A stretch of DNA of 62,869 nt, filler included, from Lenisia limosa (taxonomy: Eukaryota; Protista; Breviatea), in NCBI GenBank assembly GCA_001655205.1. It is 11 parts of 11 records of this genome, joined end to end, with 100 filler letters (N's around TTAATTAATTAA, not from the genome) between each part and the next. Parts side by side here need not be neighbours in the genome. Positions count along the whole stretch, not along the records: positions 24,057 to 27,210 come from LPNZ01000022.1; 10 more parts are not named here. One strand, 5' to 3'. Of this stretch, positions 119 to 27,210 are shown one piece after another. A model generated the notes under the pieces. It did no database searches. It worked only from the letters and a program-made list of their open reading frames with translations, and was not told the origin of the DNA. The first letter of the stretch is position 1. Each line of letters begins with the position of its first letter. The position numbers were made by a program, and so were the translations under genes.

Positions 119-3100
119 CATCCATATTGCCCATGGCCTTGAGAGCGTCTTGATTCTCTTGCTCCGAGAAAAGCGTCGGGTTCTCTTGCTGGAGCGTTAA
201 CAGGATCAAAGAACATGTACCTAAAACCCAAAACAAGGACGCAAAACCGATACTGTCCATCCAGGGATAGATATGAAAATGATATGTAGTACCCGGTGTA
301 CTAGTGCAGCATTATGGACCACTCAAGTCGGGACTTCATACCTCCTTCAACATCTCCTCAACAGCCTTCTTCTGCATTTTCTCCTTGTCTCCAACTCTCG
401 CAAAGCCGTCGAAGATCTCATTCGAGTCCTTATACAGCTCCGCATCCATGGCGGCCATTGTGTCGGTAAGCGGCGCGTCTGGGGGAGGGGGTAAGGTACT
501 TTTGAATGGGGGGACAAATTAGAGAAACAAAACCCTAAATGACAAAAAATATCAGTTACGGATCTGTGAGAGAGGTGAAAGATAGACTTTGGAACAAAAA
601 CAACAAAAAAGAAACAACACATAACAAAAGCTTGAGAAAAATGCCTAATCGAAATGAATTTCGTCTTGGCAGAGCCACATGCCTATACAGCCAGCACCCC
701 ACCATCATCATCACTGTCGTCTTCGGCATCAGGAATTTCTGTCACGTTTGCGGCCATTTTGGTGGCTGAGTAAAGTTAGCCAACTCCACTCCCATGTATC
801 CATTTCACCGGAATCAGAGAAAGCCAAATTCATTATAAAAAAAACTGTTTTTGAAAATCAATTTTTTTAAAAGGAATCGAATGGGCAAAAAAGCAAGGTA
901 AGGCCCACTATGAGTTTGCGTAACAGGTCCTTTTGATCTGACTAGATGTGGTTAAGAAACACAAAGTCATTAGTTGAAAGTACGATTTCATATGAATATT
1001 TTCAGCACAATAGCTAATGTATTTATTACTATTATTTACACAGCAAATGTTGACACCCACTGCTGAAGTTGTGAAGGAGTCTCATCATTTCCATTTCTTC
1101 CTCATTGTCTTCATCGTACTTCTCGGGGCTACGGTTGGGTGAGTGCAATATCCACATTGGGCTTCACATCGGTTTAAAAAAAGACTGAATTTCTCGATAA
1201 ATCCTCGAAAACTATCGATATTTTACCGTTTTCGAACCGAAGTGAAGCCCTAAATATGGACCGAGCAACAGGATAAAAGTGGATACAAAAGGGAGGAAAC
1301 CTGAGAGAGGGCTATGTAGTATTATATATCATATTCCGTATTTCAAACACAAGATACACACTTGCCGCCAATCTCACTTTGCCTCAGCGCCCCTTAGGCC
1401 AGATTCAGTCTCCAAGAACATCTTCATTCGTTCCAGAAGATTCTTCGTGGCTCCAAGCTTTGTTGTTAGCACTACTTAGGGTTTTATTTTGGATATACAC
1501 ATATATAATACATGTATAGTATACATAGCTATATACACGTACATACCATATATACTACTATGTGTAACTATATGATAAAAATTATGATTACTTCATCATT
1601 GTCTTAAGTGATTAATTCTAACGAGGAAAAGAATCCCCCCACCCCGCCCTCGTCGTCATCCTTCACGCCGTCCTCCTCCATGGCCTTGCGCATTTGTTCG
1701 GCCTGAGCCTCCAACTGACTGTCCAGGTCGGCTGGGTTGACTTCTCGCCAATCTGGGGGGGAGGGGGTAAAGATGGAAAAATCATGAAAGAAAAAAAAAA
1801 GACAATATAAAGCAATCCAGCTCTCCCAAAAGAGATCAGACCTTCATTATCATCCTGTGTGCTGGGGGTGAAACGCGGCAGCTCCTGTGAGTACAGCGAC
1901 TTCCAGAGCGTTGATCTCAGGGATCTGGGGGTATGAGTAGGTTTCACTTCGGTTCAAAAAAGACTGCATTTTTCGATAAATCTCCGAAAACTATCGATAT
2001 TTTTGCGGTACTTTCAAATCGAAGTGGAACCCAAGGTATGAGAAAAAGATCCTATTCTACTATTAGCATTTGCATAAAATCCGAGATCTTGTCAACACTT
2101 ATTGCTAAGTGAGGATGTAGGAATGGTCTAACAAAGGTAGTGTTGGTTCACTTACGTGGTGGTGGTTTTTGACTCATTTGGAAGAGGTTCGTCAGGCTGG
2201 TGGAGTGAGACTGATATGTTCATCATGACAAAACCCAACAAAAGGTGATGGGAGAATGGGAGTTTTTTATTTCAGGTGAAAAAAAAAAAAAAAAATTAGG
2301 GAAGTAGATTTNNNNNNNNNNNNNNNNNNNNNNNNNNNNNNNNNNNNNNNNNNNNNNNNNNNNNNNNNNNNNNNNNNNNNNNNNNNNNNNNNNNNNCTTG
2401 GTGCCAAGGAGTTGACAAGCAAGCATTTCAAGGCCACATGCCTGGAGGTGAGTCGAAAGCTTAGTGCCCTAAGAAAAGGCGAATGGTAATGGTCATACTT
2501 AACGCTTCACTTCGGTTCGGGAAAAATTTCGATAGTTTTCGAGGATTTATCGAGAATTTCAGTCTTTTTTAGAACCGAAGTGAAGCCCTTGTCATACTAT
2601 TGTAAAGTGTTGTAAGAGTATTGGTGAGCGACAATAATAACTCCACACGCCCACCCCCCAACCCCCAAAGAGAACACAGCATTCAGCCCTGCCACCATTT
2701 TAATGCCCATGTCGTGGCTCTTGTGTTCGGGATAGCCGACGGGGGGTGCGCGGAGGGACTTATGCGGACTCGGGAAGTTCTAAGTGGATAAGAAACGCGA
2801 ATGGAGACAAAGGGCTAATAAAGAAAAACCACTGTTTCTGTTGAAGAGGATGGAGAAGAGAAGCCAGACGAAACCTTTGTAGGTTCCTTCGGATCACTCT
2901 GATAGTCTCACCCCTTCTCCAAACCTGAGCGATGGTCTGTGCGAACAGGAGGCGAGAGAGGCGAAGAGACACCTCTACCATTTCCACCGACTCATCATTG
3001 AGAACATGTTGAAGCTTACGACACCGCTGAGGTGGGGAGGTAAAGTTGGAAAATTGACGCAACAAAAAAAGCCCAAAATCATCTCTGTTGGCTAACAACT

Positions 3101-6100
3101 CACAGGGATTGAAAACAACAAACAAAGCCCATAAAAAGTTATCTCAAGCCATACCTTGACGTCATCTTGTGAACGTACATAGAACGCGCGAACTGCAGCG
3201 GCACATAACTGAGAAATGAATACTAAAAGAAACAACAGCAAAGAAGGTATTATCTGGCTGAAATAGTCAATCCTATTATTTCTTTGACAACGATATCATC
3301 ATCATGTTTACTATTTCTTTAATGGTATGGTCTTGTAAAATTGTCAGCCACCCTGCCACTTCAAGCTGACCCCCCCCCCCCCNNNNNNNNNNNNNNNNNN
3401 NNNNNNNNNNNNNNNNNNNNNNNNNNNNNNNNNNNNNNNNNNNNNNNNNNNNNNNNNNNNNNNNNTGGCAGTGCACTAGGTGCTTGTTGGCCTTGAAACC
3501 CTCGCTTTTGAATCTGGTGGTCAGGTCACTCGTCATCTTGGTTAAATCTCGAGAAATACAATCTGATTGCCTTATGGAACTTCCCCACCCCCCACTCTCT
3601 GATTGCCTTATGGAAGAAGGACTGCAAGTCCATGTCAGGCTGGGCAGCTCTATTATTGATAACCTGCGGGACATTATCAGAAATTTGGATAACAGTATCA
3701 TCATATCATATGATATCATATGGTGCAAAATCAAGGTGCTATCGTGAATGAAACCTCATCAACCTTGTACACCGTTTTGTGGAAAACGCCATGGCCCTCT
3801 TCCTAAACAGTGAGCAATTCATTCGAACATATCATCATAAAACTACAGTGACCGGGATAAGTCTTGACCTATTTTCCTTGGGAATTCACATAGCAAATCG
3901 GTCGATTTATCCGGTCGCTGTACATAAAACGATGCCTCAGTAGGAGACAGAACCCGGGTCATGAGAGCGTTCAAAATATGAGCCAAAACAACAAATGTTC
4001 CGCTAACCAGGTTCTTGGGGGGCACCATACAGAGCTTCCCTTTGTTGATAAACACCTAAATCAGTGAGATAAAGTAACAAAAGTTAAGAGAAAAATATGC
4101 GATTCACTTCGGCCAGAAAAAGATCTGTGGTTTTCAATGTTTGCCGCTGACAACTGAGACCAGTAAGAAGAAGCGTTTAACTCTGATTCTTGTTTTCTTG
4201 ATTTCTCACCAATTTAGAGCTCTTAAACTCTATCGAGTGGGAGACTTTCTGAAATCAGACCACAGCATCTTCGTTGATGAAGTTTGAAACGAGAGAGCAT
4301 GTTAACCTAATGTTCCATTATGATGTTAAAAGTTACCTACTTATTGATGCCCAGCACCACCACCACCTGCGCCAGACTCGTTCTTTTCATGGGTTGACTT
4401 TATTACCTTCTTGTTGTTTGAAAAACTTGGAGCCCTATTACCTCTTGAAAACACCAACAGGAGCTAGGGTCCCTGCTAAACAGGTAAGCTTACAGCATTA
4501 TTTGTCTCCCAACAAAGCGTTATTGGTTTTTCAGAGAAGTTGGTCCAGACCTTTAGGGCTACATTGGAAGCTCGCGAACTTTCCTCGCACCAGTCTCAAT
4601 TACCAATGTCTATAACATTGTAGAAGTAAGCAGGTGTTTAGATAGGGGCTCCTAACTATCACTTATCTTTGTAGACTGAAGACGGTGTCCCGGAAGTAGT
4701 CGTCAAAGGAGGTATGTAATCTCATCGTTGAATTCTTGTTACCTCCTAGTATCAGCTCAGACACAATAGAAGGCAGTGCACCTTACAGACCTGTCCCAGG
4801 TGCAGGAAGCCCCATCACCTTGCAGATTGCCCTTCATGAGAGCATGATGGATAAAACGTTCAATTTCTCCAATATTACGTCGTGTTTTTTTTTTTTCTTC
4901 TTCTTCATAATCTCATTTAGTAGATGTGAAACCTGTAAGGGACCACATCTCTCGCACCGCCATAAGAAGACCCCTATTAAGACGCTATATTTTGTATTGA
5001 ACATGATTATTAACATTCACAGGGAAGCTGCTTCCTAGTAATTTTTTCTTTATTTTCATTGGAAATATAATGACAATGGCTTTTAGTACTATTTTCATTT
5101 ACCTGGAGGAAGTTGATTTTGAAAAAACTTGCTCATCATTTCCAGAACAACATTTACACCTATGGAGCAGAGAGCACTGAGGCCATAACTACACCTCAAA
5201 GGCCTTCAATGATTTTGATTGTAAAGTTCTCTTTTTCTATAAACATTTGCAAGCCTGTTGACGAGATCCCTTGTGATCGCACTCCCAGCGCTTCGGCCGA
5301 GTCTGCCAAGGGAAGGCACCGCCGCCTGTTTGGTCGGTTCCATTGCAAGGAGTGTATCGACGCAGGTCGCCCCAAGTCTGTGGCCTGTTACACTCTGATA
5401 GATTGTCCTCTCGTGGTGTGTGCCTGCGGTGATCCCGGACACATCCGGGGGTACTGCTCCAAGTCCCATGCCCCCAAGTCCGCGAACGCAGTTTCATCAA
5501 GCCCCCACCTTCTAATTAAATCATCAAGCCCCCACCTTCTAATTAAATCATCAAGCCCCCACCTTCTAATTAAATCTATAATCCCTGCTGGACGTAAAGT
5601 CACGACTCCAAGAAAGTTTTTGGAAGCCTCCAGCTCTAAGCCAAGATCCCCATCTACCGCGTGGGACACATTCCAAACATTAACGCTTTAGTATCCGGGG
5701 AAAACTTTTAATACACGGACTAAGTCTAAGCTCACCTCTGAGCTCGGGATCCTTGACGCACAGTGCCAGCTCAGCCAGGGCCCCGTTGTGGAGCCTACGA
5801 GTATGTTCCGTTATACTGTATCGCCTATGTCCAGGCTGATGGAGCCAAGGCCTTCAAGGGACGACGATCATTCTTCCGTCTCTTATATTTTATGGTGAAA
5901 TTACTAGAAAAGCCTTAATAGTACCCCCCCCCCCACTCTGTTGTCCATAAGGTCAGGATCTACCCATCCTGGTATGAAGTCCGCACAGTGAGTCATAAGG
6001 AACTGATGATCTTGTTCGTAGACCCTAGGGGGGGGGGGGNNNNNNNNNNNNNNNNNNNNNNNNNNNNNNNNNNNNNNNNNNNNNNNNNNNNNNNNNNNNN

Positions 6101-24056: not shown

Positions 24057-27000
24057 CCGACTTCAAGGAGTATGCGTCCCCTCAAATTCCCTTGAATGTT
24101 ACTCTTTCCCCACCAAAAAAGCGAAAAGCCCCTGCGAAAGAAGTGACAGTGGATGAAGAACCCCCCACTGTATATTTTGACGACAATGAGGATGATGGAA
24201 AGCAACAGTGTCCCTGTTGCCAAAAGTGGTATATTAAGTCGCACAACTGCCAGGTTTCTCGCCTGACCGGTGTTGGCCGCACTGTCTACCACTTGTCTGG
24301 TCTTGATCTTTACCTGGTTCGGCGGACATCGAACGGTATCGCGGACTTCGTTGTCTTGCGTAAGATTGGAGACGAGTACCACAAGTCAACAAGGGAGAAA
24401 GACCGCAGTGTGCCGGGTGAGACTGACCACCACGTGCAAGCTGCCCAGGCCGAGGAGGCAAACACCCTTTTGCCAATTGCTGCTTCTGGGTTTCAAAATA
24501 CCCTTTTTGAACGTGACCCTGCCCAAGCGCAATCTCTCCTGGAAGACATCCAGTCTGGTCATATCAAGCTGTTTAAGTTCCCTGCAAACGACCAAAACTC
24601 AACAACAGTTTTTGCTCTCCTTGCCCCAGCTCAATCACCTCAGTTCCCCCATTACCAACCTCACGGAATCATTCGCCTGATAGCGCAGAAAAACCGTTAT
24701 GGGTCCCTGGTTGTAACCTGCGCTTGTGGCTGGAGGTGTTGCCAGCACCGTACGTGTCTCTACGCTCTAGGACATGGTCACTTCCCCGTCGCCCACTCAA
24801 CAAAGTCGCAGTATGACGGTTTTTTGGAGTTTAGAGTTCGCCGCGAGTTCCATCAGCTTCCCTTGGTGCCGTTGCCCCCAACACTCATAAACAAGACGAA
24901 TAACCATCTCCTTCCAGTTTTTGCCTGCTGCCCAGTATGTGACGGCGGTCTCAAACACAGTCCTGCTCAGGTTACCCAGTTCCCATCCGCGAACGGGATC
25001 ATGAGCATCCAAGGGACTCTCAGCGTTGACATCGCCGTCTGCATTGACTGTAGACTCCCTCTCTACTGGCATGACCCCTCCTCTGGGTTTCTGTTAAACC
25101 ACAATGCGCTAGCTCCCACTGAGCTCCTCGATCAACTGATGCGAAAGGTGTTCAACCAAAGAATGCCATTCACCGCCGTCATTGAATTGTTTATGGGGGA
25201 CCTGAGAGCGCTGCACTCAAAAGCTAAGGGTGTCGTACCATTCCCAACAACCACGATAGACTCAAAAAAGCTGCTTGGATTGCTAAGACTCTACATTTCC
25301 CTAGTCAAGCTTCCCTCTGGTCTTCAGACAGTTTGCGCAAAGCATGGTAGAACCCCTCCGCTTGGCATCTCGGACGGCCTCTGGAAGCTCCGGACTGTTA
25401 TCCCTGCCCTGCCTCCTGCCCCATCCTCACTCTCACCGCGTGTTGCCTCGGTCGCTCAATCTAGCAACAACCCTTTCCCAGACACCTCAATCCGAGCACA
25501 GCTTGACCTTGGAAACACTGAGTCTAACATGTTCCAGTCCACTGATGTTTCCCAGTTACTGTCTGGATTCGGTATGGCCCAGCCTGGACTCCTCTCGGAT
25601 GAAGTTCCACCAGCACCATCATACGGCTTGTCATCCCAATGGATATCTGACTCGCTGTCTTCTGGTGTTGCTGTGTGCACCGAGGCTCATAAGTCCAGTA
25701 ACACGGAACTCAGTGTTGAGGATCTTTCGAAGCTCATCAAAAGAGCTGATATGGGAGACGAGGCTCTAGACATCCACCCAAGTATCCTTCCCGAAGCTCT
25801 CAAGGACCCGCGTCGGAAAAAGGCAATCACCTTGGCGCTTGATATGCCCATTACTTCCTCAAAGGCTGACATCAGATCCCGACTCAGCCTCCTTGACGGA
25901 AAGGACGTGTCACCTTCTGAGGTCAAGACATGTGGGTACTATATGGCATACTGCCCTTGTGGAGTCCCCCTTTGTGCCAAGTCGATGCTACGATCGGAAG
26001 GTGTTGGTGATGCGATTGATATGCAACTGTCCTTCAAGTCCCCTTTCTCTGTTTTAGTTACTGACCAGTCTGACCAAGTGATGTGCCACGGAAAACGGCG
26101 TAATGCTATTTTCTATGAAGACACTCCGGCTTTCCACTTGGATGGACATGCAGTCGAGGAGAGCGTCATCCTTGCTGCACGTGATGCCGGAAAAGCGGTC
26201 TCTGTTCTGGAACATGGGTTTGACATCTCCAGCTACCCAGCCAACCCCTTTCTGACAGGCCACCCGGTGACAGGGAAAACGGACACATTGGTCATTTCCG
26301 ACTATAAGCACCATACCACCCACATCACCAATGCCAAGAAGAAGGCCAAGGCAGCAGATTCCGACAATGCCGAAGAAGTCAGGCATCTAGCACTCAGGGA
26401 TCCGTCTTCATACGAAGGTATTGGCGGGCATCACAACCTTGCAAGAGGAGAATCAGGCCATCGGATCTTTGAGGACCACCACATTCCGAGATTCGAGTAC
26501 TGGGCTGGCTCTTTCATGGTCAACACCATAGCCATCGTAAAAGCTTGTGAACTCCGGGATGACGTTGGGCTGAAAGCGCAGAAGGCTGTTGATGATAATA
26601 ACCGTCGAAATCCTTTTGCTCTTCAAAAGGTTACAACCGATGCATTTGGGCGAATCATCATCAGTCCACGCGAATCTTCAGTTCCAGCCGACCGGTTCCT
26701 CCCTATTTGGAAGCAGTCCCCCTCGATGAACGCCTGCCAGTGCTGCAATGATCCTCTGACAAAGACCCCCAATGTCCTCATTTGCGGACATTTAATATGT
26801 CATGATTGCTACCAGCTTGGACGGCCTTGCACCCTCTGCATTGACCCAACCCTGCTGCTGATCAATTTTCGATCTTGCTCAGGCTCTTGTCAGCTCAATT
26901 GGGTTCACAATGGCTTGTCGGGTGTCATCACACCAACGGATGGCCTCATCTTCACCCAAGGTAACACAGACTATACGCTTGTCTATCTTAGTGAAGATCA

Positions 27001-27124
27001 GGTCTGGATGGTGGAATGGGACACCAAAAGGGCACTTCTTTTCCGAAACACTCCACGCCAGTGTGGCTGTTTGCAACTCACGTTGAAATCGGACCTTCCA
27101 CTACCGGCAACTAAGAACACATGA
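24057..27124 (+). mobile_element. Zisupton/KDZ-superfamily DDE transposase ORF (>1010 aa, intronless, open to contig edge) with C-terminal RING
   Basis: NLS PPKKRK; SWIM-like CACGWRCCQH; CCPVC...CIDC zinc cluster; CAKHGRTPPLGISDG (first Asp, 25373); SAP-like SSKADIRSRL; CPCGVPLCAKSMLRSEGVGD; VLVTD; GHPVTG..LVISDYKH; NLARGE; C3HC4 RING at 26735-26839. Motif order matches Zisupton/HMGXB3-type cores as I recall them. Confidence 0.8.
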
Positions 27125-27142
27125 TACCTCCGAAGCCTCCTT

Positions 27143-27210
27143 TTCTTCTTCTTCTTCTTCTCTTCTTCTTCTTCTTCTTCTTCTTCTTCTTCTTCTTCTT
27201 CTTCTTCTTC
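27143..27210. repeat. (CTT)n microsatellite
   Basis: Directly visible; runs into the gap about 20 nt after the transposase stop codon. Confidence 0.95.

Follow-up and report, generated by a model that had tools for sequence, protein, structure and literature searches.

What does the long uninterrupted reading frame in one part of a composite stretch of Lenisia limosa (Breviatea) DNA encode, and does it belong to a mobile element? The stretch as a whole, here called the window, comprises 62,869 nucleotides including filler (assembly GCA_001655205.1), and its positions 24,057 to 27,210 come from record LPNZ01000022.1. An initial annotation, made from the sequence alone, proposed that the open reading frame (ORF) in this piece specifies a Zisupton/KDZ-type transposase (KDZ: Kyakuja, Dileera, Zisupton) carrying a C-terminal RING finger of the kind found in E3 ubiquitin ligases. 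Our follow-up favors, with a probability of roughly 0.4, the reading of its product, P0001, as a KDZ-like transposase that has diverged strongly and bears a RING at its C-terminus. The reading frame and the ligand spacing of the RING are directly observed, as is the presence of several copies or fragments in one sample; the KDZ assignment of the core is the more delicate part of the argument.

The piece contains a single long plus-strand ORF, open from the left edge to the TGA at 27122–27124. A protein-identity look-up led to a 5029-bp contig of the ENA metagenome assembly ERZ3820729 (NODE_3508, coverage 294.7; locus L001), on which window position x corresponds to position x − 22186. There the full ORF spans 1030 amino acids (aa) and is intron-free, beginning at an ATG 25 nt to the left of the piece that is itself preceded, ten codons upstream, by an in-frame stop. 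The intact, intronless frame of more than 1010 aa described initially is therefore confirmed and extended, and an open frame of 1030 codons at approximately 52% GC cannot be attributed to chance. The 1.8 kb upstream of the gene on L001 is AT-rich, with many short repeats and microsatellites, and holds no convincing ORF or neighboring gene; downstream, the contig enters a (TTC)n microsatellite 21 bases past the stop codon and terminates inside the repeat.

The C-terminal RING finger was located by a pattern scan, which found C-x2-C-x12-C-x-H-x2-C-x2-C-x6-C-x2-C exactly at window positions 26735–26839, as annotated. Its eight ligands (aa 902–936) fit the canonical spacing C-x2-C-x(9–39)-C-x(1–3)-H-x(2–3)-C-x2-C-x(4–48)-C-x2-C. 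Shuffling the whole protein 200,000 times produced the RING pattern once, and shuffling only the Cys-rich final 150 residues the same number of times produced it ten times. When an isolated 61-aa RING piece was compared with Pfam, the matches were zf-RING_5 (E = 0.016), zf-RING_UBOX (0.02), zf-C3HC4 (0.05) and zf-C3HC4_2 (0.055); every match lay within the RING clan and none reached its curated cut-off, the best being zf-RING_5 at 15.6 bits versus 27.9. A sequence search of the PDB gave nothing other than RING domains at E ≤ 10, the five chains matched (E 0.11–9.2) being those of TRIM23, TRIM21, cIAP2, ML-IAP and PML. The language-model neighbors of aa 885–1030 were weak (0.69–0.73), nine of the ten best named being RING families and several of the weak neighbors being RING proteins of Nucleocytoviricota. 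The CGH..C..C core, with its loops of 12 and 6 residues, is typical of the C3HC4 fingers of IAP and TRIM proteins; between C1 and C2, Q and C stand in place of the usual hydrophobic residue, and the Pro that is common after C7 is absent. Judged on these sequence features, the RING finger is very probably real, and we infer E3 ligase activity for it. The claim of a β-rich tail behind the finger stands insofar as strands are predicted there, but at a predicted local distance difference test (pLDDT) score of only ~40: the AlphaFold model of aa 885–1030 (pLDDT 40.8) is unusable, and the tail (aa 937–1030) matched no family in Pfam piece searches at E ≤ 10.

For the remainder of the protein, the indications of a KDZ relationship come from language-model comparison and from one motif. 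The KDZ, CxC4 and SWIM clusters among the neighbors score 0.85–0.87; those of the whole protein are clusters carrying PF18758 (the KDZ family) and CxC4, one of them named SWIM-type (0.85; 180–183 of 256 features shared), and the ten best named matches all fall into one clan. With aa 625–900 alone, 68 of 100 neighbors belong to the KDZ set, headed by a chordate cluster named ‘SAP domain fragment’. Genuine KDZ genes for profile comparison were sought in JGI soil metagenomes by back-translation of DGEAPERGW, a motif of fungal KDZ proteins. One of the contigs matched, L004, contains an ORF (2820–4118) that Pfam assigns to PF18758 (3e-63) and CxC2 (6.5e-42), and this ORF retrieved 120 CxC2-type KDZ proteins, 107 of which were used to build a KDZ profile.

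The best match of P0001 to the core of this profile in hhalign places aa 429–448 (SGLQTV-CAKHGRTPPLGISD) on tGvGtVdCaRH.mKrP.gVGD (P 0.013–0.02), such that the G, C, H, P and D of a G-x5-C-x2-H-x4-P-x4-D block line up with aa 430–448 when one gap is allowed. Across 106 KDZ sequences this block is the one most strongly conserved (H 100%, C 98%, G 97%, D 96%), and the CxxHGxxP...SDG string singled out in the initial annotation lies on it, with marginal significance. Profile alignments were controlled with shuffled, locally shuffled, reversed and unrelated-ORF sequences: against shuffles, the gapped alignment gave p values of 0.006–0.07, depending on gap cost and null model, and the reversed sequence scored far lower. 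In the CxC2-type KDZ core itself (n = 106, alignment columns 89–113), the corresponding segment reads G-x5-C-x2-H-x9-D-L-Q-x-G-E and is situated between the DANF and YDIACQ motifs. Conservation of the G-x5-C-x2-H block exceeds that of the aspartates presumed to be catalytic, so the block may bind a metal or belong to the active site.

Related sequences from the same sample bear on whether the gene is mobile. A second contig of the assembly (L002, coverage 27) carries aa 909–1030 at 96.6% nucleotide identity; the fragment begins inside the RING and stops 20 bp past the stop codon, precisely where L001 passes into (TTC)n (L002 4210–4597; L001 4958–5029; window 27144–27210). Both contigs have this point in common as the 3′ limit of the repeated unit, and no inverted counterpart of it was found at the 5′ limit. 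The differences between this fragment and P0001, five synonymous and seven non-synonymous codons, reveal no clear constraint. A third contig (L003, coverage 34) is 96.7% identical over 118 bp of upstream sequence and the first 64–90 codons, where it shows small indels and a frameshift, and within it two copies of the 5′ unit (~310 bp; 64 codons and the 118 bp before them) follow each other head to tail (L003 1–562; the junction joins ...TGTTGCCAA to GTTTGTGAGG). The flanks of L002 and L003 are unrelated, and both contigs are gene-poor and of low depth, L001 exceeding them approximately tenfold (coverage ~295 versus 27–34).

Read depths in run X1, which is taken to be DNA because its contigs reach 178 kb, are 345–381 across the gene body, rise to 581 in the 5′ variant of the L003 type and are 6–32 in other 3′ variants, and further junctions occur at window positions 24223 and 24737. 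These values fit approximately ten near-identical copies, together with decayed fragments, in a genome of ~30-fold depth, bearing in mind that depth in a metagenome is not copy number; no second full-length copy was seen among the same-sample contigs. The gene is probably multi-copy, and the single-copy, syntenic (domesticated) state that the initial annotation had raised against itself is unlikely, given the fragments with unrelated flanks and the roughly tenfold depth. In addition, a 248-nt poly(A) metatranscriptome contig from the same study matches window positions 26445–26692, which gives a weak indication that the sequence occurs in poly(A) RNA and that the gene is transcribed. As a separate observation, the depth of the 5′ variant (581) is greater than that of the gene body, so the 5′ end of the gene may have given rise to a small satellite-like array.

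Several results weigh against the KDZ reading. The Pfam searches covered the whole protein at E ≤ 1 and 12 pieces of it at E ≤ 10, and in neither form did P0001 match PF18758, CxC, SWIM or SAP, a sub-threshold RING being the only family recovered; pieces covering aa 200–900 also left PF18758 unmatched at E ≤ 10, versus 3e-63 for a true soil-metagenome KDZ protein in the same search. None of the CxC1–CxC7 domain models matched at E ≤ 10, though N-terminal cysteine clusters exist, the SAP model matched neither aa 555–640 nor aa 585–630 at E ≤ 10, and the SWIM model matched no piece at that threshold. The sequence CACGWRCCQH keeps the SWIM ligand order with a 4-residue spacer, which is shorter than the usual SWIM spacer. 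The profile search proposed at the outset gave sub-threshold matches to RING families and none to KDZ, CxC, SWIM or SAP, and the SWIM, CxC and SAP labels are reduced to resemblances of pattern.

Comparisons with the KDZ profile led to the same result. No match to P0001 was obtained by hmmsearch with all filters off (--max) and the 107-sequence profile, and hhalign of the full profile returned just a spurious alignment of RING and CxC2 cysteines. Position-specific scoring matrices for the signature blocks DANFRLKR, SYDIACQW, FHLPAH and DGEAPERGW, with 2000 shuffles as the null, gave p = 0.32, 0.12, 0.45 and 0.79 for the D, D, H..H and E blocks, respectively, and p = 0.55 for the ordered chain, and the scans do not select D448, D678 or E807. 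A comparison named beforehand as able to refute a KDZ identity, alignment of the D/D/E residues to KDZ, thus failed both with hmmsearch and with the block scans. A permissive full-length alignment with very cheap gaps is a patchwork, unfit for naming catalytic residues. The favorable block match is itself marginal: ungapped, it has p = 0.13, and of ten unrelated real ORFs, one surpasses the z-score of P0001 under the permissive setting and none attains it under the stricter one. The language-model recognition value for P0001, 1827, lies below 2300, so that its high scores count as weak evidence. On the other hand, the KDZ profile represents the fungal CxC2 subfamily alone, and the proteins that the language model places nearest are of the Zisupton, Dileera or CxC4 type; because of this, the profile negative is weaker than it looks and is not a test against Zisupton proper.

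Beyond KDZ, an exhaustive phmmer search of 1.84 billion cluster representatives (E ≤ 0.001) found P0001 itself, two fragments from the same sample and no outside relative, and a word-indexed search of a 5.8-billion collection with the whole protein and aa 200–860 (E ≤ 10) found P0001 alone. There were no matches in NCBIfam or PHROGs, and no relatives in JGI metagenomes, IMG/VR or GTDB genomes. The AlphaFold model of the whole protein (pLDDT 31.7) is unusable, and fold matches to either AlphaFold model would be meaningless. Finally, a search for terminal inverted repeats (TIRs) between the limits of homology (L001 1728 and 4958) and across the whole 5-kb contig, its two ends included, found none, so that neither TIRs nor a target-site duplication (TSD) can be defined; the L002 and L003 homology limits are not inverted copies of each other, and L001 ends in low-complexity DNA without both element ends, which may lie outside the contig. 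The proposed route to termini and TSDs, through full copies, yielded neither.

Taking both sides together, we put the chance that P0001 is related to KDZ at somewhat short of even. The assignment is a reasonable hypothesis, plausible but unproven, that draws on language-model similarity and on a single, marginal match to a signature motif; it does not pass the usual tests of family membership. The fuller version, in which P0001 would represent an unseen divergent branch of KDZ-like proteins, an intron-free transposase with its own C-terminal RING E3 and a second independent origin of the combination of transposase and RING, is more tentative again.

The strongest competitor is a lineage-specific host family, in which P0001 would not be a transposase but a nuclear E3 ligase of the RING type, equipped with additional zinc modules, and ordinary duplication would have left pseudogene fragments. 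Such a family would account naturally for the RING being the only family signal from alignment-based tools and for the missing transposase profile matches, TIRs and TSDs; moreover, the local tandem duplication that contains one of the fragments (L003) is a non-transpositional mechanism, and the 5:7 ratio of synonymous to non-synonymous differences in L002 is as expected of a decaying duplicate. We nevertheless consider a host family less likely than the favored reading: outside the RING, the language-model neighbors are KDZ transposases and not E3 ligases, the best profile match falls on a KDZ signature block, and unrelated flanks, ~3% divergence and approximately tenfold depth would sooner be expected of mobile DNA.

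The multi-copy evidence would serve equally well for a mobile element of another or undescribed superfamily, such as a CMC/Chapaev/Transib-like DDE transposase or a non-DDE element, and a RING combined with a complex zinc module is documented in some Chapaev transposases and in RAG1 (PMC4411706). P0001 has several C-x2-C and H-x3-H motifs that would suit such an origin, and its KDZ similarity is marginal. Against this, the RING is N-terminal in Chapaev and RAG1 but C-terminal in P0001, neither Pfam nor PDB searches gave a RAG1 or Transib match at E ≤ 10, and no CMC or Transib family is among the language-model neighbors listed, which together make this origin distinctly improbable. Less probable still is a viral gene, from a giant virus or an endogenized element, with the high depth contributed by an abundant virus. 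The Nucleocytoviricota RING proteins near the tail, the tenfold depth of L001 over the two other contigs and the orphan status of the sequence hint at it; those neighbors score just 0.69–0.73, IMG/VR holds no relative, the 1.8 kb of AT-rich, microsatellite-bearing, non-coding DNA upstream, with no neighboring genes, is unlike a dense viral genome, and the contigs around the diverged fragments are poor in genes and low in depth. A LINE-like element, hinted at by the 5′-truncated 3′ fragment and the microsatellite tail, was rejected, as neither a reverse transcriptase nor an endonuclease can be detected and the ORF lies at the 3′ end, and a prokaryotic or phage origin was rejected in view of the absence of flanking ORFs, the microsatellites, the patch resembling a nuclear localization signal, the presence in poly(A) RNA and the lack of NCBIfam or PHROG matches.

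The features of the locus are collected in Table 1. All of the motifs quoted in the initial annotation are present, including CPCG..LRSE, VTD, GHPVTG, DYKH and GE. PPKKRKAP is a putative nuclear localization signal by its likeness to SV40-type signals.

Table 1. Features of the P0001 locus in window coordinates, with residue numbers of P0001 in parentheses.
Feature	Position	Strand	Remark
Coding sequence of P0001	24057..27124	+	Left end is the piece edge; TGA 27122–27124
Portion of the ~310-bp 5′ unit tandemly duplicated in L003	24057..24223	+	Duplication junction at 24223
PPKKRKAP (aa 26–33), basic patch resembling a monopartite nuclear localization signal	24107..24130	+	
N-terminal Cys/His knuckle C-x-CC-x7-H-x-C (aa 60–73; CPCC..H.C)	24209..24250	+	No Pfam match
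SWIM-like C-x-C-x4-C-x-H (aa 230–239), CACGWRCCQH	24719..24748	+	Pattern resemblance
Second cysteine cluster CC-x2-C ... C-x2-C (aa 299–340)	24926..25051	+	
SGLQTVCAKHGRTPPLGISD (aa 429–448), best local match to the KDZ core profile	25316..25375	+	Marginal significance
CAKHGRTPPLGISDG, string quoted in the initial annotation	25334–25378	+	
Pro/Ser/Gly/Gln-rich low-complexity stretch (aa 455–550)	25394..25681	+	Probably disordered
SAP-like helix-turn-helix string RRKKAITLALDMPITSSKADIRSRL (aa 594–622)	25811..25897	+	Pattern resemblance
Candidate catalytic region: CGYYMAYCPCGVPLC, VTD (D678), PAFHLDGH, GHPVTG, DYKHHTTH, GESGHRIF (E807)	25931..26461	+	No profile support
Stretch matched by the 248-nt poly(A) metatranscriptome contig	26445..26692	+	≥99% alike, depth 8
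C3HC4 RING finger (aa 902–936)	26735..26839	+	Loops of 12 and 6 residues, CGH core
β-rich C-terminal tail (aa 937–1030)	26840..27121	+	Predicted strands; no family found
20-nt 3′ trailer, up to the limit of homology with the L002 fragment	27125..27144	+	
(TTC)n microsatellite, end of L001	27146..27210	.	

Several side observations concern the surrounding DNA and the KDZ family at large. A G-rich motif (GTGGGGGTGGGG-like) occurs five times upstream of the gene (L001 853–1216), and ORFs with proline runs on L002 suggest similar G/C-run repeats there. The same contig has a tRNA gene on the minus strand (L002 5217–5288; Rfam RF00005, 58 bits), ~600 bp away from the fragment of the gene, in a region otherwise poor in ORFs. 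In the JGI soil metagenomes, the DGEAPERGW search matched more than 120 contigs (L004–L123) carrying CxC2-type KDZ genes with the exact motif, mostly split into exons of 150–280 aa, from which it follows that this fungal transposon family is abundant in soil metagenomes. One further ORF with a DGEAPERGW-coding pattern, 694 aa long on a 122-kb contig (L019 608–2689, plus strand), has no Pfam family at E ≤ 0.01 and is either a chance match or an unrecognized relative.

If the favored reading of P0001 as a divergent KDZ-like transposase is followed through, the gene product would be a nuclear, zinc-rich protein. It would most likely serve as transposase to a Zisupton-like DNA transposon of the cut-and-paste kind that acquired a C3HC4 RING and a small β-rich domain at the C-terminus. 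Its N-terminal Cys/His clusters and SAP-like motif might bind DNA or chromatin, and the middle part would form a catalytic core of the RNase-H-like type, split by a long insert that is disordered. An E2 enzyme recruited by the RING may ubiquitinate the transposase itself, limiting its level; alternatively, the targets could be chromatin or host factors where the element inserts, as with the RING of RAG1.

Should the core truly be of KDZ type, RING ubiquitin-ligase fingers would have been recruited by DNA transposons more than once, and P0001 would offer a simple, single-ORF system for the role of a ligase in a transposase, be it self-limitation, chromatin marking or defense against host silencing, a question that bears on why RAG1 keeps its RING. 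Should the core not be a transposase, P0001 would stand for an orphan family of RING proteins, and the interest would be purely local. Whichever holds, a complete 1030-aa protein cannot be placed by alignment-based methods among 1.8 billion sequences. The combination of KDZ and RING is an attractive idea that needs element termini or a fold to become a finding.

Compared with the known KDZ proteins (PF18758 with CxC1–7), P0001 is likewise a large eukaryotic protein with N-terminal Cys/His clusters, and it matches the G-x5-C-x2-H-x4-P-x4-D block with marginal significance, has KDZ, CxC4 and SWIM language-model neighbors and is probably multi-copy. It differs in lacking a PF18758 or CxC match, in D/D/E residues that do not align and in a probably disordered stretch of ~100 aa that comes after the motif. 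Zisuptons are multi-exonic, with proteins of up to 1400 aa that are recognized by PF18758 (PMC9297572), whereas the P0001 gene is intron-free; Zisupton elements also have TIRs and 8-bp TSDs (PMC12730594), neither of which was found for P0001. The statement that Zisupton elements can carry F-box accessories proved correct, as one platyfish Zisupton isoform carries an F-box and fish have F-box::CxC7 genes (PMC12062965). The likeness to P0001 is that of a ubiquitin-system module on a KDZ-type protein, but the F-box is a substrate adaptor of cullin ligases, whereas P0001 has a RING and no CxC7 match. A RING finger on a KDZ or Zisupton protein is not reported in the searched literature, and no catalogued RING-bearing Zisupton was encountered there.

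The RING of P0001 has the same ligand order and short loops as the C3HC4 RINGs of the IAP and TRIM proteins (cIAP2/BIRC3, ML-IAP/BIRC7, TRIM21, TRIM23 and PML), from which it differs in scoring under the curated cut-offs and in standing outside a BIR, B-box or coiled-coil context. A parallel in overall design is offered by RAG1 and the RING-bearing Chapaev elements (CMC/Transib), which fuse a DDE-type recombinase or transposase to a C3HC4 RING. RAG1 has an N-terminal RING with E3 activity (PMC4411706; PMC10799480), two Chapaev subgroups carry a RING after the Chapa domain (PMC4411706), and, in 2015, Kapitonov and Koonin knew of a RING in no transposable elements beyond Chapaev and RAG1 (PMC4411706). 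No similarity of P0001 to RAG1 or Transib was detected in the Pfam or PDB searches, and its RING is C-terminal, whereas in RAG1 and Chapaev it is N-terminal, following the Chapa zinc domain. The novelty claimed initially for a transposase with a RING is accordingly narrower than proposed: as RING-bearing transposases are already known in RAG1 and Chapaev, what would be new in P0001 is the C-terminal RING on a KDZ-like core, a new version of an existing design.

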